The notes beneath the pieces are model-generated. The model saw only the letters and a list, made by a program, of their open reading frames with translations, was not told where the DNA came from and made no database searches. Shown one piece after another: positions 4,901 through 22,390 of a stretch of DNA of 64,000 bases (within the stretch, counting starts at the first letter, position 1; each line of letters begins with the position of its first letter). Made by a program: the position numbers and the translations under genes. The stretch comes from Stylophora pistillata (Eukaryota): the NCBI RefSeq assembly GCF_002571385.2, contig NW_019218027.1, forward strand, positions 130,637 through 194,636. Direction: 5' to 3'.

Positions 4901-7293
4901 GGCTAGAAACTGTGTCATTGAAAACCTACTATAAGGAAAATACCTGAGATCCAAGGCTGAGTGAAACTATTCCATCTTCAAAAGCAGAGTGAGTGTCAAT
5001 GTGAGGTGGAATACCTTCCGCATAAAAATAAAAATAAAAATACATTTCTAAAAAAGTGATTTGAAATATATTTACTAATATATCCAGGGAGATAATGCAA
5101 TTTACTAATATATATTACTATGTTATGGAGAGCGCCCATATTTTTCTAGAGTGCGTTGCGTTACGTAATTATTAAAAATAGAACGAAGAAGTTTCTAGAA
5201 CATTTAGTCATGATGACTAAGCGAGAACTTTAAGGAGAACCTTCTAGAACCGTGACTCAGCATATTTTTGTTATGATGTAATCATAGTGTAATGTTTCTA
5301 AAAATAGCAATATTACAGATCTCTAGAACATTCTAGAACTTTCTGAAAGATATATAAGAAGTCACGCTAGCTTAAAGAGAGAGACCTTTTAGTGAGCTAT
5401 AACTGCTGTTGCGAAGAGCCCAGAGGAGCGAGAGCCGGACAGAGTTGTTTACTGGAATTGAAAGCCGTGTGGAAGGCTACGTGAGAGAAAGAATTACGGA
5501 CGTCGACAATTTGTTAAAGATTTTCAAGAGAACTGTGAGTTGTGCGGTAGTACACTGAGATTTAAGTGATATTATTTGTAAAGGGCTCTAAGTTATAAGG
5601 TTACTGATTGTATTAGTATTTATATCGCTCCGTAGCTAAGTGAAAAAGATAGTTATTGTACTGGTTGTCGATATCGCTTCGTAGTTATTACGTCAGTCAA
5701 TAAAGTAGTTGAGTTGTACGAGTTATATCTTTCTGGCGGTTTGGAAAATACCGTAACAACTAATATATATTACTAATATGTCCAGGGAGATAATGCAAGT
5801 AATATTTGTTTTACTGAAAGACTGAGCAAAGTTGGATGTGTTCAGCCAGTCTATCCTAACCAGAATTGCATCTAGTGTAATATACAAAGACAAGCTTAAA
5901 ATAAAAACTGCCATAGAGGCACATGTTTTTGTTTTGTTTTGCAGAGGCAAAGCCTCCAAGAGAGGTACTATGGCCTTGCCAATTGCAGGTTTCTACTACC
6001 ACCACCTTTTTCACCACATTCATGTTACCACAAAGGCTCTAAAATTCCCTGCTTTTTAAAATTTTTCCTAGGTAACAGGCTTTTTCTAAGGTAACAGTTG
6101 GTATGAATTGCCTGTTTCATTTCAACTTTGATTTTCACATGTTAAAGCTGGAAATTATTGATAACATCTCTACATTTCTACCTTTAGTCTGATTTGTTGA
6201 AGGAAACCTCATGAGCTTTTTATTTTCATCATCTGCTTAAAGGTAGTTTTCCCCTTTAAATAAAATTTAACTCTAAAGATTCAGTTCTACCTTGGCCTGG
6301 CTTGTATTCGTTAACTGTCATTTGATCTGGTTTGAACATGACTTTCTCCTGGACACGATCCAACAGTACGTCACAAACACCAGGAAAACCATCAGGTAAA
6401 GGATTTGATTTGTCTACATTATTTGATCGATACAAAAACTCGTAGCCAAAATGTTTGACTCTCCTATGACGAAGTTCCTGATTTGCTGTGAAAGAAGAAG
6501 AAAGCTTCTTATATGACTATAAAAAGGATATCTAATGAACCATTTTTTGTAGACACTTCTGAAAAAAGTTGTCAAAAGGGTCCACCTCTGAAAAAAGTTG
6601 TCAAAAGGATCTAAATATTGTTGGCTTCCTTGAAGAAAATAATCAACCCTCCCTATACAATTACCTGCCATCCTCGGGGGATGGGGTGGGGGAGAAGGGC
6701 GTGGAGAAATGGAACTTCTTGTTCCTAACGTTAATACTTGATCAAAACATAGTACCTGTGCCTTGAATCTCAACCTCATTCCCTTCACTTCCCCATCCCA
6801 GTACTTGAATTAACTGCTCCTCTTCTGCCTCCGTCACAAAATCATCCACTAACACAAGACCTGATGGTGTGGCCTGTTTTTCAAACGAAACATCATCGGG
6901 TAAATTTGTGAGGAATGAAAGGTAGAATCTGACGTCGGGTCTCGGAAACTCTGAAGGACAGTCTAAAACACGACCGTGCACTTTTTCCATTGCCTTAAGT
7001 GATTCACTGACATGCTCAAAGGTGATAAATGAAAAGGATCTACCAGGGAACATCAGAAGCCGCTCTATGTTTCCAAACTTCTGAAAAAAGTTGAAAATTA
7101 GCTTTCGGTCTATGCCACACATAAACCCTCCATTTCCGACCATCAGATGGCGAGTGGGCGATTCTGAAACTATGGCAAGTTCGGAATTATTCCTGCGAAG
7201 ACTATGAATTAGTCTCGTCTGCTTTCTCAGCGCCTTTTTTTCTGCTTTGGTCAATTTTGTTGCACACGTTTTCATTGCATTCGATGTCGCCAT
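1924..7293 (-). CDS. ALKBH8: Alkylated DNA repair protein alkB homolog 8 / tRNA mcm5U methyltransferase (RRM + AlkB 2OG-Fe(II) + Trm9-like MTase)
   Basis: Exons (minus) 7293-6756, 6485-6291, 5014-4944, 4226-4120, 3563-2985, 2533-1924 join in frame. Motifs: RRM (RSFSFITF), [68 protein letters not shown]...C zinc cluster, [24 protein letters not shown]. Confidence 0.96.
4436..4605 (-). mobile_element. Degenerate tRNA-derived SINE in an ALKBH8 intron
   Basis: The minus strand reads GTAATGCAGTGGTGAGAACACG...GGGTTCAACTCC (A/B-box-like), followed by a body. Confidence 0.5.
5121..5758 (+). mobile_element. Solo LTR (Gypsy-like) in ALKBH8 intron 2
   Basis: TG...CA ends with terminal inverted 8-mers (TGTTATGG / CCGTAACA); 4-bp TSD ACTA at 5117-5120 and 5759-5762; internal TATATAA near 5351 and AATAAA at 5699-5704; 638 bp. 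Confidence 0.88.
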
Positions 7294-7439
7294 CTTGGAT
7301 TTTAAATTTAGCGAAAAAACCTCAGACCTAAGTACTCGCTGGCTCTGTGATCTCAGCTGGCGGGACACATAACCCACTTGGCGATACCCTGGAAAATTAC
7401 TCGGATATTTTGAGGTTCAGTGGAGGACAAGTGACATTT
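7294..7439. promoter_or_regulatory. Compact bidirectional promoter shared by ALKBH8 (-) and URAH (+)
   Basis: The two divergent ATGs (7293 and 7440) are separated by only 146 bp. Confidence 0.7.
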
Positions 7440-10400
7440 ATGCAGTGTAACGCAAGATTATCCAGCATACGGAAACACATAAGCCCAGAAAAGGTTAGTT
7501 GATCTGCGCACTACATAATGTTCCCATATGACTTAGAAAATTGCAACTAACGCTGTATGCTAGAAGTCACTAATGCACTATTGATCAGTTAGAGTAAGTT
7601 TTAGATGAGCAACATAAAACAAAATGCCAGAAGACGCTTCAAAAACCAATACCTAACATGTTGTTTGTGAAAATGAAACAAGAGAAACGATTTTATGGGA
7701 AAAATATCAGCTGTTGGGGGAGATCTTTTGTAACAGCGTATACCGTGCGCCTGTAAGGGAGCCCCCCACTCTCCCCTCCCTCTCTTACATTGATACCTAT
7801 ATACTCAGTGGAAAGTGCAAAGAAGAATTGATCGTGATAATTTATTTAAAGTGTTGAGCTGTTATATCTTTTCATATGTAGCCTTTTGTTTCATCAGTAA
7901 TCTGAAAGGTGACCTACCCCTTCTTTCCCATCTCACAAACTGCCTCTTAAACCATATTCCTATCCTCTGAGGGATCAGAAAAACACTCAAGGTATGTCTA
8001 GGGAAATGTTGGTGTCCTTCCAATCTTCACATTATATGATATTTTCAGTCCTACTGTAGTACCATTATGAAGAGTGAAAAAGTCACCAAAAGTTCTCTGC
8101 ATCTTGCTTCATCTACACAGTATATAATCTTGTCTCCTGTTCAAAGTTAAGGTTGGGAGAGGGAGAGAAAACGTTTTATGGCTGTTAGTTAGAACCCAAC
8201 TGTCTTGAACATAAGCTTCTTTAATGGGAAATTTGCATCATCCTTTCTGGACCTATACATTTCTTTTAGATAGTCCTGCCAATCTCTGTCTTGAACACCA
8301 GCTTACATAACGGAAAATTTTCATTATCCTTTCTGGACACATACAACATCTGTTCTATATTTAGGCAAATCTATTTGTTAACCCTTTACACCAAAACATC
8401 AGTTTCCAAGTTCTCTATTCTTGCTTTCTGAACATTTCCTATGATATAATCGTACTTACAAGGAGAATATGCTTCATGATCAAGAACATCTTGACCTTGC
8501 AAATAAATACATTAACTTAATCAAAACTTAATCCTTTAACTCCCACCAATGACAAGTGTCTAATTTCTCCCAATAGTGTTCCCCCTGAATCTTAAATAAA
8601 CTAAGTTAATCCTATTCCATAACTCAGTGATACAATGCCATTGGTGGTACTTAACTCTGCTGTTACTTTACAAGAGAATAAAGGCTGATAGTTTCGAAAG
8701 AAACTGTTTGGGGCTGCATAGGCGGGAGTAACGAAATAATTTGGATATATCAACAAAGTTGAAATGGTAAATTGGCCACCGTAACGATTACAAAAGCTGA
8801 CGTTTCAAACATTAGCCCTTCGTCGGAGCGAAGGTTGCAAAAGTGTTGACTTGGGAGGGAAGCACTTCCTCTTGGTAGTGGTTTTACTCTTTAATGTTAA
8901 CCCTGACTTAAAATACTGTCTCTGAGTAGGTCTCCCTCTGGAGCCCAATTAATGTTCAGAGACACCAACCTCTGGAGATCTCAAATCTAGAGATTTGTTT
9001 TTATGGACCACCAGCACCCCCCCAACTGAATTTGCCTATGCAACCCCCCCCCCAAAACAAAAGTTCAGACTGTGAACCTTCAAGTGTCAGTGAGCATATC
9101 GAGCAATTTCATGGGAAAAATGTGGATCTATCTGTCAGGGATTTCAATTGGTCAAATACTCATCCAGTCAGACTCTCACTTAGATAGGTGTAACAAAGAA
9201 GAAACTCTCTTTTTTGTTTGCAATTAATGATGTGCATTGCGCAAGAAAATGAAGTCAGAAGCCGTAACACAAGCATAAGAAGCCAAATGATTTTGGAATT
9301 TTGGAACATGTGGAGCTTAAATCATGTTTTTTGTGGGCAACTGATCCAAACTTTCTTTTATCTGGGAGTTTTGGTCAACCATATGGGAGAGCGGGAAATT
9401 AGCTCTGTATCCAGGAGACTCCCAGATAGTCCAGGAGAGTTGGAAGATATGCTATTGTTTTGGCATCAATTGAGGTAACTTAAGGAATCCTTTGTCCATT
9501 TTCCTTAAGCCAGATCTCAAGAATGGTATGCCTTTCTGAGGGGTAACAAACCTAGATATGCTCTTTTCATAACCACAACAAGATCATCATTGAGATGAAT
9601 GTAGAATTTGAATAAGACATCATCCAGTTTCTCTGTTTGCAGTTGCAGAAAAAGGTCAAAGCAGTTCTCTAAAAGACTTGCATCAAAGCAAGAAAAAAGT
9701 TTTTAATCAGTAGAGAAATCTAATTGCCCCGAATGAGTATTTTTTTTATGCAATAGATGGTTTAAGGTCAGAAGTTACAGTTAGTTGTGTAGTCTGATCA
9801 AGGACTGAGAAGGAATTTAATGAGAAGCAGTGACTGATGCTTTGCTGATAACCTGAATGGAGGTTATTATCAGAGTCACGTGATGTCATTTCTGGTGTTA
9901 AGTGCATTTGGTGAAGTTGCTTGACTTAGACAATGTCTTCACCCCAGGTTTTCAAAATGTCAGTCACTGTTACAGACTCTCTTCACCCACACGATCAGAC
10001 TACATGACCAACCATTCAAATTATCTGACCCTGCCGAGGAGGGCCTGGGTTTTAAATTGAATACTCTTCTTGTGAATGAAACCAAAAGGAATCTGAAGCA
10101 TTTTTATTGATCTACTGTTTGGGTTTAAGTATGAAAGTGTTCAGTGCAGTCTTACACCCTTTGCATGTGGAAAAAAAATAAGTTAAATTTTTTATGGCTC
10201 ATTCTTTGCAGAGAAAGTTGAGTATGAGCTGTGTCAAATAAGCTAAACTGACTGTTTAAAGTTTAATAAATCACCACGAAATGAGTTGAGGAAACTTTAG
10301 GCATTTGCAGCTAAAAGAAAGCTGCATAGTTAGTCAATATAAAATTGGGTTGTGTCAAGCAAAACAAGGCGGAGAGAGGTATGCAGGGCTCTGGCACTAG

Positions 10401-13400
10401 TGCTAGACCCCTGCACGCGACTTTGGCAATTCCCTCCCACGCTATTGTGACTTTAACTTCAGCTTTTCCTTTAGCTTACATAAAATGCTGAAGATGCTAT
10501 CGCTTTCTGCTTAAAGTATTGAAGGGGAAAAAAACGGATCTAAAACTTTAAGCCGGCGCAGGAATCTTACAAATGTGGCAAACTTGTAGTTTCCATGCCA
10601 ACACATTATGCCGCAGCAAAAACACGACGGGAATTGACAGCTGAAGGGAGTTATCTTCGTATAGAACCAAATTCCTTTCATAATCTATAAGGAATGAACA
10701 GAAGTTAGAGAGAAGACCTTCTTATCGTCAGATCAGGAGTTGTTCACGACCTGGCACTTAACAAAAGAAATATCTCTCGCAACCATCAAGAATAGTCCAT
10801 TAGAACTGGTGTTATAGAAGCAGATATGAGTAGTGCTTCCGAGTGGAACCTGAAATTCTGATAAATTTAGCCCGTAGAAGCGTGGTTGGAAATTTTTCTG
10901 CGACAGTAGCTTGCAATAGTTTGAATTTCCGAACGGAACGGAATGCTCAACAGTTCGCTTTAAAATGCTCAAAGGCCGAGACGGATCACAGCCGTTTTTT
11001 CTTAAGTATCTATTATTGTATAAATTATTTAAACCGTTAAGGCGCATTTTCCTCTCGCATCACTCGCGCCATTTGTGTCCTTGCATTATAAAAATATGCG
11101 TGAAATTTTCCTGTTTATTGCGAGTAGTGAGGTCACACTGTTAAAAAAAAACTTGCTTTCACACGTCAATCTACGAAATAGGAAAGAACTATATATAGCG
11201 GAACGAAAACTTAAGGCGATTTGGTAAGCATCTGAGTTTTTTCAGCATTTTTCTATATTGCGCTCTGGCTGGTAAAATGCGGCGATTTTATCTTGTTTTA
11301 TGTCGATAGATTCAATTTAGAGGGACGTAACTACTTGCGGTTGGGATAACATAGATTACTGCCAGAATGTCTCTGTTTAAATAAAGCAGACTCGAAGATA
11401 ATTGAGTTAACTCAAGGAATTGCATAACACTGCAGTTGTAGAAAAATGTCATTAGAACATGATATTAGAATTGACACGACAGAAACTTTTTAAGAAGCTC
11501 ACTTTTTTTAGGCTTGTCTTTCAAACTGAAGAGTTGTTCCCAACGTACTGTTGCAGTTCCAGGTAACTATGCGTGAAATGTGGTCAATTCCAAATTAAGT
11601 TTGACCGTGAAGCACACGAAAATGAAATCTGCCACATCAATCTAATTTAATAAAATGTTATTTATAGCATTTGCAAAACACCTAAGACCAAAATAATTGG
11701 TTAGAAAAAAAAAAGAGAAGTAACACACCTACACTTTTTTCACTTTTTCTCCTGTCTGAGCTAAAGAAGAAAAATCTTTTGTGTCCTTTGTAGATAGTCG
11801 TCGTGTACGACTTCAAACAGATGTTAAATCTGGTCAAACTTTAGGATGACGGTATTTCAAAAGGTTTACACGTAATCTTACATGATACCGAAAAAAGTAT
11901 TTTAACAAACTAATACTGATAATTTCCACTCGATTGAGTTCACAATGTCTAGATCTTCAGTCTCTGCGGAAATATTGTCGAACTCTGTTTTTAGCCGGGG
12001 GTAAAAATATATGAGCGATATAGTAAGTGCTTGAAGAATTTACTCTTTGCATTTTGCAATGATATTTGAAAACGTTGTTCCCGTATTGGCTTTTATCGGA
12101 TTTAGTTTGTAATAAGTAGGCGCCTACATTATGGCATCGTTTTAAAACGTTTTTCGAGGGCGTGCACAAACCACTCGGAGCAATCAGTAAATGCTTCGAA
12201 ACAACTGCCCTTACATTAATCTACACTGTTATAGTGCTTTGCAAATTTAAAAAGTGTAGACCTGATTCTACTGGTACGGTTGAATCGAAAGAGGAATCGT
12301 CATTGATGCGGCTACGCTTTAAGCTTTTTTCGCATAGCAGTATTTTTGTTATAAATAGCAGCATTTTTCTAAAGGCAATATCTTGACTCGTGTACTCGGA
12401 AAGTAATATTTCTCTGAAACACATCGTCGCTGTATTAGCCCATGATTGGATTTGGACAATAGCATTATTTGACTTCCCCTTGTCCGAACGTTAAAAAGCC
12501 GTATTTGTCGAATAGTGTCATGTCGTATCAAGCGGAAACTAAACTTGAAACATATTAAGGACTAACAGCTTTCGTGGTTTGACGTGAAATCAACTGTTAC
12601 GTATGCCTGACTTCTATAAGGAGCCTATTGAAAATTACATTTTATTTAATTTTAGTTTTTTGTTCAAGCTTCTCGTTTAATATATTGTCCAAATTGTGAA
12701 AACTGACGTTGATTTTCTTGTAGAGCCAATATCTTTTCTTATGAAAAGTTCAACCATATTGTTAATTGTTATACATGTCAACATAGTGTATTCGTAGTCG
12801 CTTGTCTATTTTTCGATTAATTACAAGAAGATATGATACGACAATTCTCTGTGTGGTAATATAACTTGGAGTCACAATAGATACGACGAAAAGAAATCAA
12901 TATTGACTAAATGTTATCTTTTGGAAAATTACCTCGCAATTGTCTCTGAAAACGTTAGTTATGATGGTCTGGATGTGAGCGAAAGCTGTGAAGATAGCCG
13001 GAAAACGTTTGTTAGATCCGTGTTTTCGTTTAAGCTGACACCGAGTTTTATTCGAGGTTATCTAGTAATGATATCAAAGTCAACCATACTGGAGATATTC
13101 TCCGGAAAGGGACCTAATATCGTTGACTTCCCACTCGACCTTAAAAAAAGAGCAGGTATTTGATGTAAGCTTTTCGGCACCACAGAAATAAGTCTCTTGA
13201 AATGAAGAATGAAGATTAAGTTATATTGGACCAGTTGTTACCAAACCTTTACTGTAAACCACGCCAAAGAATCTGAAAATCCTTTTATCGTTATGAAGGT
13301 GGACAGCCCTTCAGGTTTGTTTAAGTCATCTGCATCTTTTTCTCTGGTGGATAACTATGTTATAGCGGTAAATAGGGGTTTGTGCGATATAAATAATCTT

Positions 13401-16400
13401 CCCAAGGGTCTACGATTGCTGGTGAGTGTGTGACATCACTATATATTGCCCGGCATCAAATCATCTTGAAGTCTTGCTAGCGCGAATACGCGACAACCTC
13501 AATCTCCGCGCGATAATGGACGAAGAAACAAGCTCAGTTGTTCTCCTTCCCGAAGTGAAAGTAGAACCTATGGAAAACCCGGAAAATAATGGTGACAGTG
13601 AAGAAAGTTCGGTTGGAAGTCCAACGGACGAAAATTCGCTCCCCCGTTTTGGTGAAAGTTCAGAAGAAGACATTCAAAGGTTGTTGGAGCATCGCTCTTG
13701 TAGTGAAAATACATGGAGGTCCACAAAAAATGCCGTGAAAATTCTCCGCGACTACATGGAAGAAAAAAGTATGGATGTTAACTTCGAGAACTTGGATAAG
13801 GCAGCGTTGAATGATCTTTTGCGTAAATTTTACGTCGAAGCCCGCAAAAAGAACGGCGACTACTACAAGTCTTCTGCTCTGGGAAGCATACGCTTTGGTA
13901 TCCTGCGGTACTTACAGTCACAACAGAGCAATATAGACATCAAAAATGACCCTGAATTTACCGAATCAAACAAAATTTTTAAAGCTCAGGTGGAGAAGCT
14001 CAAAAAGCAAGGCAAAGGCGAGGTAAATCGTTCCGACATTGGCCCAGATGACCTAAAGAAGCTTTACCTGAGTGATGTCTTGTCGCCATTCAGCGCCGAT
14101 GGCTTGCAACGGAAAGTGTTCTTTGACCTGCTCATGTATTTGCCTGGAAAACGGAATCGTAGTAACGTGAGAGAACAAACCCGGGACACGTTTCTCGTGG
14201 GCTATGATTCATCTACTGGCTTGAAGTATATTTATCCTAACCCAGCACATTGTGAAAATGTTTTTACCGATGGAAAATGTCCTCGAATGAATGAGAAACC
14301 AGGTAACCTTTTATTTTTTTTTTTTTAGAAAACAAGCGAGAGTATTCAAAACCTTATAAATATTTTCGTAAATCGAGGCAAATTTTGTTTTTGGGGCTTG
14401 AAAACGATTTCTTACAAGAACTTTTCGAAAGCAAAGAACGCGTCAACAAATAGTATACAAAGTCGTTAAAAAGCGAAATTTCGCAAGTAAAATCTCTTAT
14501 AATAAGAGTGTTTGGTTGCAGTTGGAACAAGGTCTCTTAAACATATCTATATTGAAATTTTACTTTCACGTTAATTGATGCATGCCTCTCCAATTGAAGT
14601 TTGTGAAAGCTTTCTTATTTTACTGGGTTATGTCCTACAAAGTGGTTCAAAGTTAACCACCAAAATGAAATAACTGGCTTGGCAAAGTTTTATGACTTCA
14701 AACGTTTTTCACTGTTTGGTGGAAGGGAAGGAAGCTATTTATGTCAGTAGCATGAGGAAAGTTTTGTTCTGACAAAAAGATGGTCTAATATTTTGAAAGG
14801 ATTTTGAGTCTAGTTCAAAACACTTCAACCTGAAATTCACTAAACACATAGTAACAATATAAATTACAAAACAAGCTTAAAGAAGGCACATTTGCTTAAG
14901 AGTTTAGGTGAATCAGATGTCTGCTGAGGCCTCACTGAAAAAATCCTTGTTATTTTGAAAAGGGTCAGAGAAGGATCATGGCATTTTTCCTTTCACCCTT
15001 CCCCCCCCCAAAAAAAAAAAATCTCTTAAAACTTGTCCAATAATGGTATGCTGTGATGTGAGAGAGAGCATGATTTGTGCCTGGTAATTGAAACTATTTA
15101 ATTGTAAGCTATTGTCCATAAGGCGAGTTGAGCATTATGAAACATGAGCTTATGAGACCTAAAATATATGTGGTGTCTCTGATATTATGCAATACTTTAA
15201 AGATGCTTGGTTGGAGAATACTACTTGTATGTTGATATATTGGTTTTGAAATAAAGGAAAGGATTGTAAGATGAGAAATATTGCTTTCACCCCACCCTCC
15301 TTCAGGAAACCCAAGATGTCCGGTGGCGTCATTTCTGAAGTACCTGTCGAAGCTGAACCCAATGAACTTGTACCTATGGCAGAGACCAAAGGCATCCTTC
15401 AAACATCACGCTTGTGAAGATGACCCCATTTGGTATGAAAATGCTGCAGTTGGGCACAACTCCTTAGGGGAAATGATGACAAATATGTCCAAGCTTGCAC
15501 GGTTGTCCAGAATTTACACAAACAACTGTATCAGAGGTACTTATGTGGCAATTCTCGACAGCTTGGTCGAAGACTACCCTCTCATCACTACTTTAGTATC
15601 CATACCCAGCTCCCAAAGATTCCAACATATTCTCCCCAGAGATCCTTGTGATGAACGTCCAACCATGGTGCCTGTTACTGGAAAGTATATCTCAAGTTCA
15701 GAAGGGAAAACATCCCCAAGAACCAATGAAGGAGCCCCACCATCTAGTGCAGAGTCCAATAGAGAACAGGCTCAACTCACAAAGATAATGGTTCCAGGGA
15801 ATTTCTCTCATCTCCAACACCACCCTGGCAAGACAAGAAATTCTCCTCCTCAAGAAAGTAATGGAATTGATCATCGTGAGAAGCAAAGGGATGGAGGCCC
15901 AACAAGTCCAACAGAATCTGTTCTTGGCCTTCCATACCATTCCAGTCATAGAAATCTCCACAGTCCCTTTGTTGCGTACAGATTTTCTCAGCTTCATGCA
16001 GCTTCCCAAAATAACCTAGCACGCAATCTGCACCAACCATCACCTAAGACTTCTCTAAGTTTATCTCAGGGGTCAGTAACTCGGGCAGGAAGTAACCATG
16101 CAGGGCTTGCAAATTCAAGAGTTGTTTATTGTCAAACATTGCCAGCAATGGCCTCATCATCAACGTTGTCACTCACTGCGGTAAGTGGCCACAAAAGACA
16201 CATTTCCTCTGTCAGTAATACAAATTATAAACTGTTCTCTTACTCCAGTGTGCAAAAGTTTACCAAATGGGTTATATCCTAAGCCATGACACTACAAAGG
16301 GTGGTCTCTGGGTTGTATTGTGAACTTTAAAACATATCTTTTTATGTTCACAACATTAGTAATTTACAGTAAGTTATGTATGATGCACAATGTTTCCCAA

Positions 16401-17928
16401 AATATGATAATAACAAACATGCAAATGCAATTAAAATCATATTGCAATTTAAAGTAAATATTAACAATCAAAAGGTACTTTTTAAACATGCTGGTAAGAA
16501 CAAATTAGTTAGCTGCCTACAATTGTTTTTTTTTTTTATGTGGCCCTGACTTAGTTACACACACTTTTCACTTGAACTCCTTACTAAGTGACATGTAGAT
16601 GACTGGTTGTTTCTGTGACTGACAGCATCGCTCAAGTGATAATAGTCCAATGACAGGAAGTCCTCTAACCACTCATGTGCTGGACACAGCCAGAGGTTCA
16701 CCAGCTAAGAACTTGCCAATTCAGTTGTACTTTGAAGAAATGCGTCCAGACAGTAGAATGTGGAAACATATTACCTCAGGGTAAGACAGACTTAATTCAG
16801 TTGTTCAATTTTGAAACTAATAGTGGATTGATTTGGATTTGCTTTACCAGTCTTTACTCTTTTACTGGTTAGAAAAGGTGCATTTCCCTCACTGCCATCA
16901 AATGCAAAACTCAAAAGTCCAGTCACAGCTTGGTAACTTCAGTTTTTGCACACTTCAAGCAATTTGCTTGTCTTTACTCTGAGTTTTCAATTGTTCTTTT
17001 TTATATTTTCATTAGCCCTTGTTAGCCATTGTTATCACTGTTAACTTGGTTTTACAACAATCAATAAAAAAGGTAGACTCTGAAACATCAATCAAATATT
17101 CAATACATCGAGATCTAGCAGTACATATACTGATAGTTATTGAAAAAATTTATTCGCATTTGGTGTTTATTTTTGAACTTACATTTTGTGAGTAAACCAA
17201 CTTGGAATGTTTTTGCTTTATTTTGACCTTTTCCTTCAGGGTAACTAATGCTGATGGTAGAGTACCCAACTTACTAACTCAAGAACAGTTTATACCTGGT
17301 AAATACATGATCAGATTTGAGACAGAGGCATACTTCAAGGACATTGGGGTTTCTTCATTTTTCTATCCATATGTAGAGGTAATGAAAGCGTAAAATACTG
17401 TTATTTAAAATATTCACATCAACACTGATTCTAGGCATTGTCCACATTATGCTGCACTTCTTCCCTATATCTAGAGGTACAATAATCACAAATTTGCTGT
17501 GCTGCAAATATATTGGTACTCATTAGTTGTGTCTACATTCTTCCATCAAACATTGCAAATTGCTTCCCCAAGTTCATGCAGAAAAATCCCTGTAGATATC
17601 AAGAATTTCCAGTGTCTTGTAAGTCAACAACTTCCTTCAGCTTCATAATCATTATGGTAGTTGAACTTAGGGGAGTGCAATTCAGTCTGCGATCAAGTGT
17701 ATGTTTTAAACATGAAACAAGCATACAATACTAGGTTGATTTAATATTGCAGGCACAGATGACCTCAGCAAATGAATTATCTGCTCTCTATTGACAGATC
17801 ACAATATTTTGCTCAACTTGTCCATTGTTCTTTTTCAGATCGTGTTTCTCGTCAATGACTCATCTCAGCACTATCATGTTCCTCTTCTTCTCAGTCCGTT
17901 CTCTTACTCAACCTATCGTGGAAGCTGA
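7440..17928 (+). CDS. URAH: 5-hydroxyisourate hydrolase (transthyretin-like), PTS2-bearing isoform, ~145 aa
   Basis: Exons: 7440-7493 ([18 protein letters not shown]; PTS2 RLx5HI; donor GTTAGT, phase 0), 16626-16780 ([13 protein letters not shown]), 17240-17378 (TNADGR...FYPYVE), 17839-17928 ([19 protein letters not shown]). The C-terminal YRGS is the HIUase signature. Catalytic exons are secure; the exon-1 link is inferred. Confidence 0.9.
8677..8832 (-). mobile_element. Penelope-like element pseudo-LTR fragment with a mutated hammerhead (CCGACGA)
   Basis: Reverse complement of the 61037-61192 segment. Confidence 0.8.
9786..10004. mobile_element. Decayed palindromic repeat, related to the copy at ~43524-43690, with degenerate hammerhead-like cores
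   Basis: Ends TGTAGTCTGAT...ATCAGACTACA; internal CAGGTT...GTCAGTCACT segments are shared with 43593-43637. Confidence 0.55.
13516..16282 (+). CDS. Crypton-derived DUF3504 (tyrosine-recombinase-like) protein, KCTD1b/ZMYM/QRICH1-like, nested in URAH intron 1; ~587 aa stand-alone or ~681 aa if spliced to URAH
   Basis: Exons 13516-14302 and 15306-16180 (or to stop 16282) join in phase 1. Motifs: [109 protein letters not shown]. Confidence 0.88.
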
Positions 17929-19526
17929 AACCTCATGTGGGCTACTTCAAAGTGGATACACAGCTGATGATTGTCAGAAAAATGACAAGCTTGTTTACAA
18001 AGGCAATTTCTAATTTTGTTATTGGTGTAGGCTGGTGTAAATTTAGGGACAGGTCTTGTTTGGTTCATTTTAAGATACAGTTGCAGATGTTTTCTTCCAA
18101 ATTTTTCAAGAGCTACAACAGAAAGCTTTTGGCATGTTTGTTAAATAAAGTTATACTTTTATTGTATCTTTTTAATTTTTGTTATTCAGACCCTATTGAT
18201 ACAAGTTCACGGTTTAACTCTAGCTGATATAATGTTGGGGTGTGACTAGAACTTCCATGAATTTTCATATCTTATCACAACTATCTAAAATGGTCTAGAT
18301 TAAGCCTGATAAGTGACATTAGTCCAGCATCCTTTCACTGACCTTTGGCAGCCTCATGCTTGCTTAGATTTGCAGGGTCTCAATAGATAAGGCTTGCGCC
18401 TGTTGCTATTTTCTCTCACCTTAAAGCTTTGTGCCACTGTGTCCTAGTAAGATATCAGACATGCAGAACGAGGTAGATTTAGTGTTTCCAAGCTCTCAAT
18501 CAGGGAGGAGAAAGTGGACCCAATGCTCAGAAAACTGTAATCTCTTATTTTTCACACTAACCATGGCACTAGAACCTTTTAGTTGAGCTGCAAGGTTCTA
18601 GTTCTGGGACCAAACTGGTCTACATGGCTTTAAGTGCCTGACCATGCACTTAGGAATATTCTGATTTGCTTCTAGTTTCTAAGCACAAATTACTCCATTT
18701 AAAAATAAATTCAAGGTGACTGTTGGTATTCTTTGCAGCCATTATAAGACTTGTTCAGACTTTTTTCAGAGGGAGACAGCAACCGAAGAAGGTTAATACT
18801 AATTCTAGTGTGCTTTAATGCTAGTAAATTGACTGTGTGGTCATCATTTTAACCCTACTTGTGCTGACCAAAGAGGTGCCACTGATATCTTAAGAAAAGT
18901 TTACCCTATTTGGAGCAAACATTGGGGAGACAAGAAGATATTTACCAGACACTTGAACACCAAACAAATCAGATGGATAGAGATAACTCTAAACAATTAT
19001 GTCACTTTGTTGTTGGACAAGAAATGAGATTCCATTGAAGTTGGTTGACCTTTATTTAAGTTAGTTGATTGTTACTTAAACTTTCCTTACAATTTGTCAA
19101 CAATAACAGTTTTAAATATGGCTCCAAAAAGATAAAATTATTTTCAGTGAAATAAACATATTCAGATAATTTCTTATGTACAAATGTATAAAATTGGTAT
19201 GTACAACTTTTCAAGGAAACTTAAAATTATAACTTATTGAATGGATTGCTTTGAAACTCGTAAAAATACTTGTGCAACCAAATTTATTTGTTCAAATTAT
19301 AGTAAACTAGTCACTTAAAATTGCACAGTTTCGTCATTCCATCAGTATTCTCTACAATAACTACAAACAATTTTTAACAGCAGAAACTGTAAGAATGAGT
19401 ATTGATTATCCATTATGCAGTTCATATGAAAATTTCAACCACATTTTCCTTAATTCTTATCCCTCTTCTTACTTATTGCTCTTGGAATTAATAATTTAAC
19501 CAGATCATCCAACAATAAATATTGAT

Positions 19527-22390
19527 TTATGAAAGATCATCTTTAGAGAAAAAATTTACTACAGCCTCATAAGTTAAAAACATTAACGCAGTGTTTGGAA
19601 CTTGTCGGAGAAGGTGTGTTCCCAGTCCACCATAAAGTCCTGTTCTTCCTTCCTCAAGCAGAATTTTTCTAAAAGCCTGGAAGAATGAGTGATATCTTCT
19701 TTTTCCATCTACTTCTTTTTGTCGTAGTCGTGTTCTGATTACTTCATGAGGATATGCCATAACAGAGGCAATACACTTTGACGTTGCAGCAGCCATCATA
19801 AATTGCAAAAAGTCCACTACATTTTTCTCATGAGTCCCTCTCAATTTGAAACGATGCCTCTGTACTTCTGCTTTGATATGTTCATAGATCACAAAGTGAA
19901 TAACAGTTTCTGTAACACCAATGTAGGTTGCAGTCAGCCCTCGATAGAAACCCTTTATCCCATCAGTTTTCCATATATTCTGGATAAGTTTCAATACTTG
20001 CCCCTTGGAAGCCCTGAAATGGAAACAAACAAATAAAAATGAAGCCCAGCTCTGTATTTTATTTGTAATGTTTCAAGGAAAGATGTAAATTTTCGAAAAC
20101 ACTGCTTGCAACATAAATGCTCCTTATTCTCCTTTACAATAAGTGGGGCTGTTTAAATATGTAAAGATTCAGTTTTTTACCTATTATCCAATTGCAGTCT
20201 TGTCTTGATGACCCAGAGAGGACTTGTCAATGATGAAGTCACAATCCCTGAATTAAATTAAAAGGATTAATACAGGTACAAACAACTTTGTTTGCAAAAA
20301 AAGTAACTGCAACTGTTGATAGCATCAAGTGCTACACAATGGACAATGCATTTATCCACTATTAAAAGCTAAACATTCCTGTTGATAAAGTTTTTCTATG
20401 CCATTAGAAAAATAAGACTCACACCTCACGAGATGATACTTTATGAAAATTTTAGTTAAAACACACCTGCTGAGCAAGCTGATCCTATATGTACAACTTT
20501 GCTTTCTGGTGACACAAAGCCGCTTCTGTTGAGAACATGTTTAGCTTTAGCATACACTGTGAAGTACAGTGCTCTCGAAGGGGCAACTCCAACTAATGTA
20601 GGCCCGAGGCCCTTGAATAGGGCTGCCACACCTTCCGTCTGGGTGATATGTTTTAAACAGGACAGAACACCAACAGGTCTTGAGTAACTGATCTCCACAG
20701 GAATACTCCACACCCCACCTGGACCAGTAGCTGATGGGTACAGAACATGTCTAAAGGCTGGAACTGAGGACTTAAAGAGTAAGACTAGTTTTAATGGTGA
20801 GACTAATAACAGGAAGGTATTTGTCGCACTGTTTATCATCTAAAATTTCTGTTATGTTTTATGGCTCCTCTTCAGGGCCTCTTTTTAACAGGCCAGCAAT
20901 CAAGACTGCCCACTTGATTTGCATATTTTGTCGGGGAACTCTTCATCTTGGTTAGGAAGCCAACATTAAGGCCAACTACCTTTCACTAACACAAGAAATT
21001 ACAGCTTGGTCACCCCAATGAAAATATACTGGGCTTTGAATTTAAGTTCCAGTAACCAGCCTATGGTGTTCAAACGTACATTTCACGTTTTGGTGCTTGG
21101 TGGCCCACCTATCCCAGTTGCCAAGTGGAAATTCTGATAGGAAAAAAAGGCCGGGTAACAATCTGAAAAACCAAACCAGCCCAGTTGACAAGACTCTTGA
21201 TAAGCTACAACTCAAGTCATTCTTTGGAAGCAGACAACCATTGAACGGACACCTACATAATCCAGATCAGCCCCCACAAAAACGTGACTGCCATCCGAGT
21301 GTACTTTGCAACCATGACACTAACGCAATCCCACAAAGTACACTATCTCGCCAGTAATTTTACTTTGAGAGGGTCTGCATGAAAATAAACTCAGCAACTT
21401 TGATTGCTAAAGAGTTTAAATCACATCCTGACAAATTATTACTCCAAGTGGTACTGTGGGCTTAATTTTGTCCCATCCGCAATCGCGCGCTTTCGCAAAG
21501 ATAACATGGAAAGCAAGTCTTCAAAGTTATACACAAATTGCGACATAAATATTGCAGATAGGAAAGCATGACTCTAAGATGAAAAAAAAAAAAGCTTTAA
21601 AATATATCTAAAGGCTTATATATAGGAGTTCTTGACGATTTTGGATAACCGTACCTGCAATCTCGTCTTTACAACTTCCAGAGGACAAGTCAATGTAGCA
21701 CCAACGGTTCCTCCAATACTGAAGAGTGAAATGCAAAATTTGCTGAGCTTGCTAACTTACTTCTTACACTTTCAACGTTAATTCTTGCACTTTCACATTC
21801 TAGATTACTACTAACATCCACTTTTGAGAACGCACACTTATGCAACGGCGTCGCAAGTTAACAATTGTTTCACACATGATCGATGAAGTGACGAAGGCAT
21901 TTAAAGGAGAAGCTTTACTCTAGGTGAATCTCTGCTAATATCGAAACTAGACCATAAACGGATGCGTTTAGAAAGCGAAAATGTATCAGACGAGCTCCTA
22001 TAAGATTGATTGTGTAATCATAAGCATACGATTGACAATGTCCCATCTTCTCGTTAGGAATCTTGAACCCTTACTTCACAGTACTATATTTCTCAACAGA
22101 ACATAGCTACCTTTCATGGAAAGATAGAAAATAGCACACAAAGTACACCTGGAGAGGCACGATTTTATCCACAGAAAATGGTGGACTCGTTCAAGCAAAA
22201 CAACGGCCGACAGGATGTTATGGCATGTGTATTTGAAACGTTCAAACGAAGGGAAACAGATCTTGTTTCGAACATACCCTCCAGCCACTAAATGGACGTA
22301 CGGGGACCTTCCTTTACTCATGTCTGGATGGATCTCGCAGTGCAAAAGATTTACTTTGGTGTCACCCAGAGTATTTTGGTAACTGGTCAT
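19527..22390 (-). CDS. SLC25A36: Mitochondrial pyrimidine nucleotide carrier SLC25A33/36-like, 5-exon copy
   Basis: Exons (minus) 22390 (or 22321)-22278, 21718-21655, 20770-20467, 20247-20181, 20013-19527 are in frame. Motifs HLVAGG, TCPLEVVKTRLQ, GVAPSRA, PLWVIKTRLQ, YPHEVIRTRLR, RQVPNTA. The SLC25A33 versus 36 assignment is not resolvable. Confidence 0.92.

Follow-up and report, generated by a model that had tools for sequence, protein, structure and literature searches.

A Crypton-derived DUF3504 module spliced in frame to 5-hydroxyisourate hydrolase in Stylophora pistillata and other hexacorals

In the 64,000-nucleotide stretch of Stylophora pistillata DNA analysed here (the window; NCBI RefSeq assembly GCF_002571385.2, contig NW_019218027.1, positions 130,637 to 194,636 of the forward strand), a gene derived from a Crypton tyrosine recombinase lies within an intron of the gene for 5-hydroxyisourate hydrolase (HIUase), and its RNA is spliced in frame onto the HIUase exons that follow. 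The in-frame chimera exists as spliced RNA, apparently as the main product of the nested gene, and we consider it almost certain that the fusion mRNA is both genuine and conserved. Overall, the observations are probably best explained by one locus with two start regions and two proteins that share HIUase exons 2–4, the parts of which, with peroxisomal targeting signal type 2 abbreviated to PTS2, are as follows.

7440–7493, forward strand: HIUase exon 1, 18 codons, read from the sequence; donor AAG/GTTAGT in phase 0; PTS2-type signal RLSSIRKHI
13516–14302, forward strand: recombinase-derived exon 1, with its ATG at 13516 and its end in phase 1; PF25561 (QRICH1 domain), E 1.4e-6
14303–15305, forward strand: GT..AG intron between recombinase-derived exons 1 and 2, 1003 nt, partly retained in RNA
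15306–16180, forward strand: recombinase-derived exon 2, ending in phase 0 at GCG/GTAAGT (16180/16181); PF12012 (DUF3504), E 3.4e-4
16181–16625, forward strand: 445-nt facultative intron linking the nested gene with HIUase exon 2
16626–16780, forward strand: HIUase exon 2, acceptor CAG/CAT in phase 0; SPLTTHVLD, including the first catalytic His
17240–17378, forward strand: HIUase exon 3, TNADGR, including the catalytic Arg; PF00576, 36.4 bits
17839–17928, forward strand: HIUase exon 4, C-terminal YRGS, stop codon at 17926–17928; PF00576, 45.5 bits

Since a further HIUase exon is found at 7440–7493, HIUase intron 1 contains the recombinase-derived gene in the same orientation, and the acceptor of HIUase exon 2 at 16626 is common to both first-exon choices. 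Exon 1 of the nested gene encodes an acidic N-terminus with a SUMO-type VKVE motif, a SAM-like/QRICH1 domain and the first half of a recombinase-like catalytic domain; exon 2 encodes the end of the DUF3504 region (NPRCPV...YTNNCIRGT) and then a Ser/Pro/Thr-rich linker of ~200 residues, which is predicted to be disordered. The fusion thus comprises 554 aa from these exons (262, one split codon and 291) and 127 aa of HIUase, 681 aa altogether; retention of the 445-nt intron adds 33 codons up to a stop at 16280–16282, giving a 587-aa product, with an ATTAAA at 16430–16435. Donor, acceptor, phases, intron length, the lengths of both products, the VKVE motif, the YRGS end and the ATTAAA had all been described in an initial annotation made from the letters alone, and a re-reading of the sequence agrees with it throughout. 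The window exons were searched singly, and the annotated Acropora orthologue (P0170) was used for structure prediction and for PDB searches that need a whole protein; the HIUase exons score 26.7, 36.4 and 45.5 bits, all above the curated PF00576 cut-off of 25.3, and P0170 as a whole scores 130 bits.

For the RNA evidence, window positions 13000–18400 were compared with the contigs of four runs, each from a different study; X10 is polyA RNA-seq, and X1–X3 are labelled as RNA by guess. The spliced joints and the near-zero depth in HIUase introns 2 and 3 indicate that X1–X3 are RNA too. The in-frame splice predicted in the initial annotation, joint 16180^16626 (skipping 445 nt, GT..AG), is present in all four runs, at depths of 69.7 in X10, 75 in X1, 23.5 in X2 and 102.7 in X3; in the same order, the retained contig 16151–16653 has depths of 14, 19, 10.1 and 33.8, nested exon 2 of 77.9, 78.1, 25.1 and 91.2, and HIUase exons 2–4 of 111, 144.1, 69.3 and 119.5. 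These are contig k-mer depths and give only rough isoform ratios, according to which the joint is ~3–5 times deeper than the unspliced form, ~70–83% of the nested-gene transcripts are spliced into HIUase exon 2, and the joint accounts for about one third to most of the HIUase-exon depth. DUF3504 transcripts are thus not always polyadenylated at ~16300–16600, the spliced joint being deeper than the retained form. Joint 14302^15306 also occurs in all four runs, together with contigs of lower depth that retain 14303–15305, and joints 16780^17240 and 17378^17839 are found in four runs each; because HIUase introns 2 and 3 have a depth of ~0, the fusion joint does not stem from DNA carry-over. The count of 16180^16626 against the canonical 7493^16626, proposed as a check on the prediction, gives the former in four runs and the latter visible in two (X1 and X2), as a loose end at 16624/16626 that carries the last letters of HIUase exon 1; X1 and X2 are the runs whose depth balance leaves most room for the canonical joint. 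In the four runs, neither a joint nor a loose end connects HIUase exon 1 with the first exon of the nested gene.

Some further features of the RNA contigs may be recorded here. The contigs run unbroken far 5′ of the ATG at 13516 (in X1, a 5337-nt contig extends as far back as ~8970; in X10, one of 2922 nt stops at 13129), and 5′ of the nested ATG they are about as deep as the retained introns, HIUase introns 2 and 3 being at ~0; this coverage of 8970–13515 could be a long 5′ untranslated region or an upstream start, or could derive from transcripts that start at exon 1 and retain all sequence as far as HIUase exon 2. The depth of nested exon 2 exceeds that of the exon-1 joint and the retained intron summed. 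Relative to the window, X10 shows 36 differences, A>G and T>C for the most part, each of them confined to one contig and at full depth there, which looks like another genotype of the species and not like RNA editing.

The arrangement was compared with six other anthozoan loci (L001–L006) and with Nematostella (L013). In these seven, two recombinase-derived exons are followed by HIUase exons 2–4 in the same order, and the phase-0 GTAAG donor and the phase-0 HIUase acceptor are kept in every one, so that donor and phase, the conservation of which had been named as decisive for the prediction, are conserved in relatives. In Nematostella, the first intron lies at the same codon and the joining intron measures 446 nt, with a GTAAG donor. 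Loci L001–L006 share the order of a minus-strand RRM/ALKBH8-like gene, the PTS2 exon, nested exons 1–2 and HIUase exons 2–4, and the minus-strand mitochondrial-carrier neighbour is syntenic in four of the six (L001, L003, L004 and L005). Exon-2 read-through open reading frames from many samples are similar up to the Ser-rich stretch and diverge right after the Val codon formed by the GT of the donor, their tails of 2–34 codons being unrelated in sequence across loci. Recombinase-derived exon 1 is 78–92% identical to its counterparts in other corals, and the VK[VI]E motif is kept from corals to anemones. The ratio of nonsynonymous to synonymous substitution between coral species, in comparisons where synonymous change is saturated, is 0.02–0.07 for exon 1, 0.02–0.05 for the first 100 codons of exon 2, 0.25–0.43 for the linker and 0.04–0.09 for HIUase, which shows strong purifying selection on the recombinase-derived part. 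In a quick maximum-likelihood tree, the deep nodes of which are weak, all HIUase-linked genes form one clade of 11 rows with support 99 and an inner order that fits vertical descent. Being common to stony corals and sea anemones, the arrangement is older than their split, which dates back several hundred million years.

The recombinase-derived module descends from a Crypton tyrosine recombinase and, as judged from its residues, is catalytically dead. Searches with phmmer relate it to a medaka KCTD1b-like protein (E 9e-47, 40% identity) and to vertebrate proteins that carry PF12012 and PF00589 (E 1e-35); the representative library contains 3067 relatives of this part, and the anemone orthologues carry PF12012 in precomputed domain lists. 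Compared with the PF00589-bearing relatives, the fusion proteins lack the GH[KR]S...Y block with the catalytic Tyr, and the HxxR of the recombinase has become NxxR in corals and [YNH]xxK in anemones, a pattern of loss as reported for DUF3504 genes (Kojima and Jurka 2011, PMC3212892). AlphaFold predicts for Acropora P0170 a two-domain module at residues ~50–350 (pLDDT 75–94), disorder at residues 350–566 (pLDDT ~30) and a HIUase sandwich at 567–675. Structural alignment of residues 59–372 with VIA-align gives QRICH1 in the Zincore-ZFP91-DNA structure (9hjt; Bianchi et al. 2025, Science 389:eadv2861) as the best match, with Z 13.4 over 244 residues at 17% sequence identity, followed by Cre on a Holliday junction (1kbu, Z 11.4) and XerA, XerD and XerH (Z 9–10); a PDB sequence search with exon 1 gave no match, QRICH1 and Cre having surfaced by fold search only. 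Exon 1 is single-copy in its own genome, with one 100% copy and the next relative at 42% identity. The module therefore combines what is looked for in a domesticated Crypton: DUF3504/QRICH1 homology, the two-domain tyrosine-recombinase fold, a lost R-H-R-Y catalytic tetrad, the tyrosine above all, and the features of a host gene (single-copy, syntenic, under purifying selection). Elsewhere in the genome, at least 100 distant matches to the recombinase-derived exon (23–46% identity) are spread across many contigs, many with open frames of 300–480 aa; they probably represent Crypton elements or additional domesticated genes.

The HIUase part aligns end to end with solved HIUases, including that of zebrafish (2h1x, E 9.5e-34) and the HIUase-transthyretin ancestor (7kcn). 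The catalytic His, Arg and His and the C-terminal Tyr-Arg-Gly-Ser distinguish HIUase from transthyretin, and THVLD, DGR, HYHVP and the terminal YRGS are all kept. HIUase is found at this one locus only in the genome of the window; genes for uricase and OHCU decarboxylase occur elsewhere in it, which indicates that uricolysis is in use. A separate observation concerns five OHCU-decarboxylase matches on one contig (766996–1437155), four of them within ~26 kb (1411669–1437155), which suggests a tandem expansion. With the N-terminal nonapeptide R-[LVI]-x5-[HQ]-[LAI] as the criterion for PTS2, the short first exon contains a motif R-L-x5-H-[LI] at all six loci L001–L006, the variants at L001 and L003–L006 being RLSTIHNHL, RLSTIFNHI, RLSSIRNHI, RLSSIAGHL and RLSAVLNHL. 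In the long isoform, this exon is exchanged for 554 residues of recombinase-derived and disordered sequence. In Nematostella, a candidate PTS2 motif at L013:5994 is not followed by a usable in-frame donor.

The closest precedent is isoform b of KCTD1 in jawed vertebrates, in which a Crypton-derived DUF3504 region serves as an alternative N-terminus (Kojima and Jurka 2011, PMC3212892), and the comparison drawn in the initial annotation is apt, as both follow the same plan: in each, DUF3504 from one or more upstream exons is added by splicing to a host protein that is older and oligomerises by itself, giving an alternative to the short canonical form, and the domain is strongly conserved but has lost its catalytic tyrosine. 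The partner in the coral protein, however, is HIUase, a tetrameric metabolic enzyme, whereas that in KCTD1b is a BTB domain, for which neither the window exons nor P0170 have a Pfam match; moreover, the coral case belongs to Hexacorallia, and its recombinase-derived part occupies two exons nested inside intron 1. Orthology with KCTD1b was rejected, mainly on the different partner and lineage, a KCTD1b-like protein (P0193) falling outside the HIUase-linked clade; the exclusion of KCTD1b from that clade points to an independent domestication. QRICH1 in Zincore (QRICH1:SEPHS1 on ZFP91-DNA, PDB 9hjt) resembles the coral protein as its best structural match and through a Pfam QRICH1-domain match, and Zincore is said to be a nuclear regulator in which a Crypton-derived module works with an enzyme-family protein; nevertheless, SEPHS1 is a separate chain there, whereas the coral protein carries its enzyme by covalent fusion; a CARD and a Gln-rich region are absent from the window protein, and binding of the coral protein to a zinc-finger factor is not indicated. 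Plant TTL or allantoin synthase (OHCU decarboxylase with HIUase; PDB 5z5m) likewise has a C-terminal HIUase with the YRGS end free, and such fusions indicate that N-terminal additions to HIUase are tolerated, although the N-terminal 554 residues and P0170 have no PF09349 match and the PF09349 genes are separate and elsewhere in the genome. Finally, the canonical peroxisomal HIUase (Urah, zebrafish 2h1x) shares with the coral gene the motifs of exons 2–4, the YRGS end and, in the short isoform, the N-terminal PTS2, and differs from the long isoform, which has the 554 residues in place of the PTS2 exon.

These data can be combined in a model in which transcripts from exon 1 (7440–7493) would give a PTS2-HIUase of ~145 aa, the ordinary peroxisomal enzyme of urate breakdown, and those begun inside intron 1 would give the 681-aa protein, composed of the acidic SUMO-motif N-terminus, the dead recombinase module, the linker of ~200 aa and an entire HIUase domain that ends in a free YRGS and is devoid of PTS2. 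HIUase is a homotetramer in its family; by forming one here, the HIUase domain would present four recombinase-derived modules, and these would lie outside the peroxisome, as the loss of PTS2 implies. Analogy with QRICH1, KCTD1b and ZMYM, together with the conserved VK[VI]E, argues for a coregulator-like role, in which the modules would act as DUF3504 does in those proteins, that is, as a nuclear coregulator binding DNA or DNA-bound factors; retention of the 445-nt intron would yield a form devoid of the oligomerising domain. We tentatively consider it quite possible that the long isoform oligomerises and functions in the nucleus by binding to DNA or to other factors. A more specific version, in which the long isoform would be a metabolite-gated chromatin factor, with the channel of the HIUase tetramer binding urate, HIU (the substrate) or a related purine while holding four modules together, and with the retained-intron form as a non-oligomerising antagonist, is decidedly improbable; if it were true, cnidarian host gene regulation would read purine or nitrogen status directly, with a bearing on the symbiosis with dinoflagellates, where uric acid serves to store nitrogen.

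Several observations weigh against the account of two proteins and a regulatory long isoform. The contigs cannot show one molecule that extends from the start of the nested gene to the HIUase polyA site, and their depths are rough; the retained form (17–30%) could still give a functional stand-alone protein; and the evidence for either isoform is at the level of nucleic acids. The Pfam scores of the recombinase-derived part, for single exons and for the whole of P0170, fall just below the curated cut-offs (28.7–30.4 against 30.8, and 21.1–23.9 against 29.7). DUF3504 has no single established biochemical role, and in ZMYM3 it mediates RAP80 binding and not chromatin binding. No clear nuclear localisation signal was found, no search aimed at one having been made.

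Among the alternatives, an artefact of contig assembly, or DNA in which the 445 nt are deleted, could be invoked because the contigs that show the joint are all short k-mer contigs, in which its shorter side has 29 letters, and because three of the four runs are RNA by guess. Four independent studies nevertheless agree on this GT..AG joint and have the adjacent HIUase introns spliced out, with a depth of ~0; the same exons are joined in independent NCBI models of five species, and DNA runs contain the entire stretch, all of which leaves this explanation practically no chance. It could also be supposed that the functional product is the stand-alone protein of ~587 aa, made from unspliced or internally polyadenylated RNA, and that the splice to HIUase is tolerated read-through. 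The retained-intron contig in all four runs, the stop within 2–34 codons of the donor in every species and the ATTAAA at 16430 would agree with this; however, the spliced joint is the deeper form in every run, a strong phase-0 donor with matching acceptor phase is found in the window and seven other loci of Scleractinia and Actiniaria, the read-through tails have no common sequence, and the end of the nested gene has no conserved stop or polyA signal, all of which make it highly improbable.

The main rival, which we regard as unlikely, concerns not the fusion itself but its role: the splice would mainly put an active HIUase outside the peroxisome (in the cytosol, the nucleus or on a scaffold), with the recombinase part as a targeting, stabilising or regulatory extension that has no gene-regulatory role. 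The catalytic motifs and the free C-terminal YRGS are indeed intact, the PTS2 is replaced and not added to, this is the sole HIUase locus of a genome in which uricase and OHCU decarboxylase genes keep the pathway in use, and fusions of HIUase with other enzymes are found in different lineages. The HIUase exons are, however, constrained by the canonical isoform in any case, so that their intactness does not prove a need for catalysis in the fusion; conservation is stronger in the recombinase-derived module than in the enzyme, and the nearest solved relative of the module is a DNA-bound transcriptional coregulator. Furthermore, HIU is made by peroxisomal uricase, and there is no obvious supply of it outside the peroxisome.

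Proteins that already join the two parts exist in the databases, unnamed or misnamed, as NCBI models of five hexacorals: Acropora muricata (683 aa), Montipora foliosa (685 aa), Actinia tenebrosa (P0176, 586 aa), Nematostella (LOC5504541, 591 aa) and Actinostola (619 aa). They were retrieved by a homology search with P0018, a transcript-derived orthologue of 439 aa, and bear out the co-occurrence of DUF3504 and Transthyretin domains for which the initial annotation had proposed a search; exon 1 compared with the representative library gave no fusion-length orthologue among the cluster representatives. The model of Actinia is named 'uric acid degradation bifunctional protein TTL-like', a misnomer, as its N-terminal part is a DUF3504 module and not an OHCU decarboxylase, and this misleading name can now be corrected. 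Among long HIUase-bearing proteins (325–1034 aa), the pairing with DUF3504/QRICH1 occurs only in those five models, the others being OHCU decarboxylase fusions, cadherin models and ant-specific models. The initial annotation, which knew of no described fusion of this kind, agrees with the literature, in that no paper of the library searched combines 'DUF3504' and 'hydroxyisourate hydrolase' and no such fusion is mentioned by Kojima and Jurka 2011 (PMC3212892), but not with the sequence databases, given the five models; this is an old two-part protein present in databases for which no describing paper was found. With regard to other long HIUase proteins, models from coelacanth and axolotl (P0203–P0205) join cadherin-1 domains to a HIUase domain and could be read-through models or another case of HIUase exon sharing, and ant models of ~500–550 aa have long N-terminal extensions on HIUase.

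The locus is flanked by two genes on the opposite strand.

6742–7377, reverse strand: ALKBH8-like gene, divergent; RRM_1, E 2e-6
19527–20839, reverse strand: mitochondrial-carrier gene, convergent; PF00153, E 3e-33

The ALKBH8-like neighbourhood is kept in all loci examined, and the Nematostella counterpart has RRM, 2OG-Fe(II) oxygenase and methyltransferase domains. As the ALKBH8-like coding start lies only ~150 bp from the ATG of HIUase exon 1, a shared bidirectional promoter is likely. At the other end, RNA contigs from the HIUase 3′ end extend into the mitochondrial-carrier gene, which is no proof of a single transcript.

In summary, the coral fusion represents a second, independent case, after KCTD1b, of a Crypton recombinase re-used as the alternative N-terminus of an oligomeric host protein, the host here being a working enzyme, and suggests a possible rule by which dead tyrosine recombinases are re-used where multimerisation comes from elsewhere. 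The locus also offers a clean example of alternative start regions that swap a peroxisomal signal for a large regulatory module. As the orthologue LOC5504541 is present in Nematostella, a genetically tractable animal, the function of DUF3504, still little understood for QRICH1 and ZMYM2/3, which are human disease genes, becomes directly testable.

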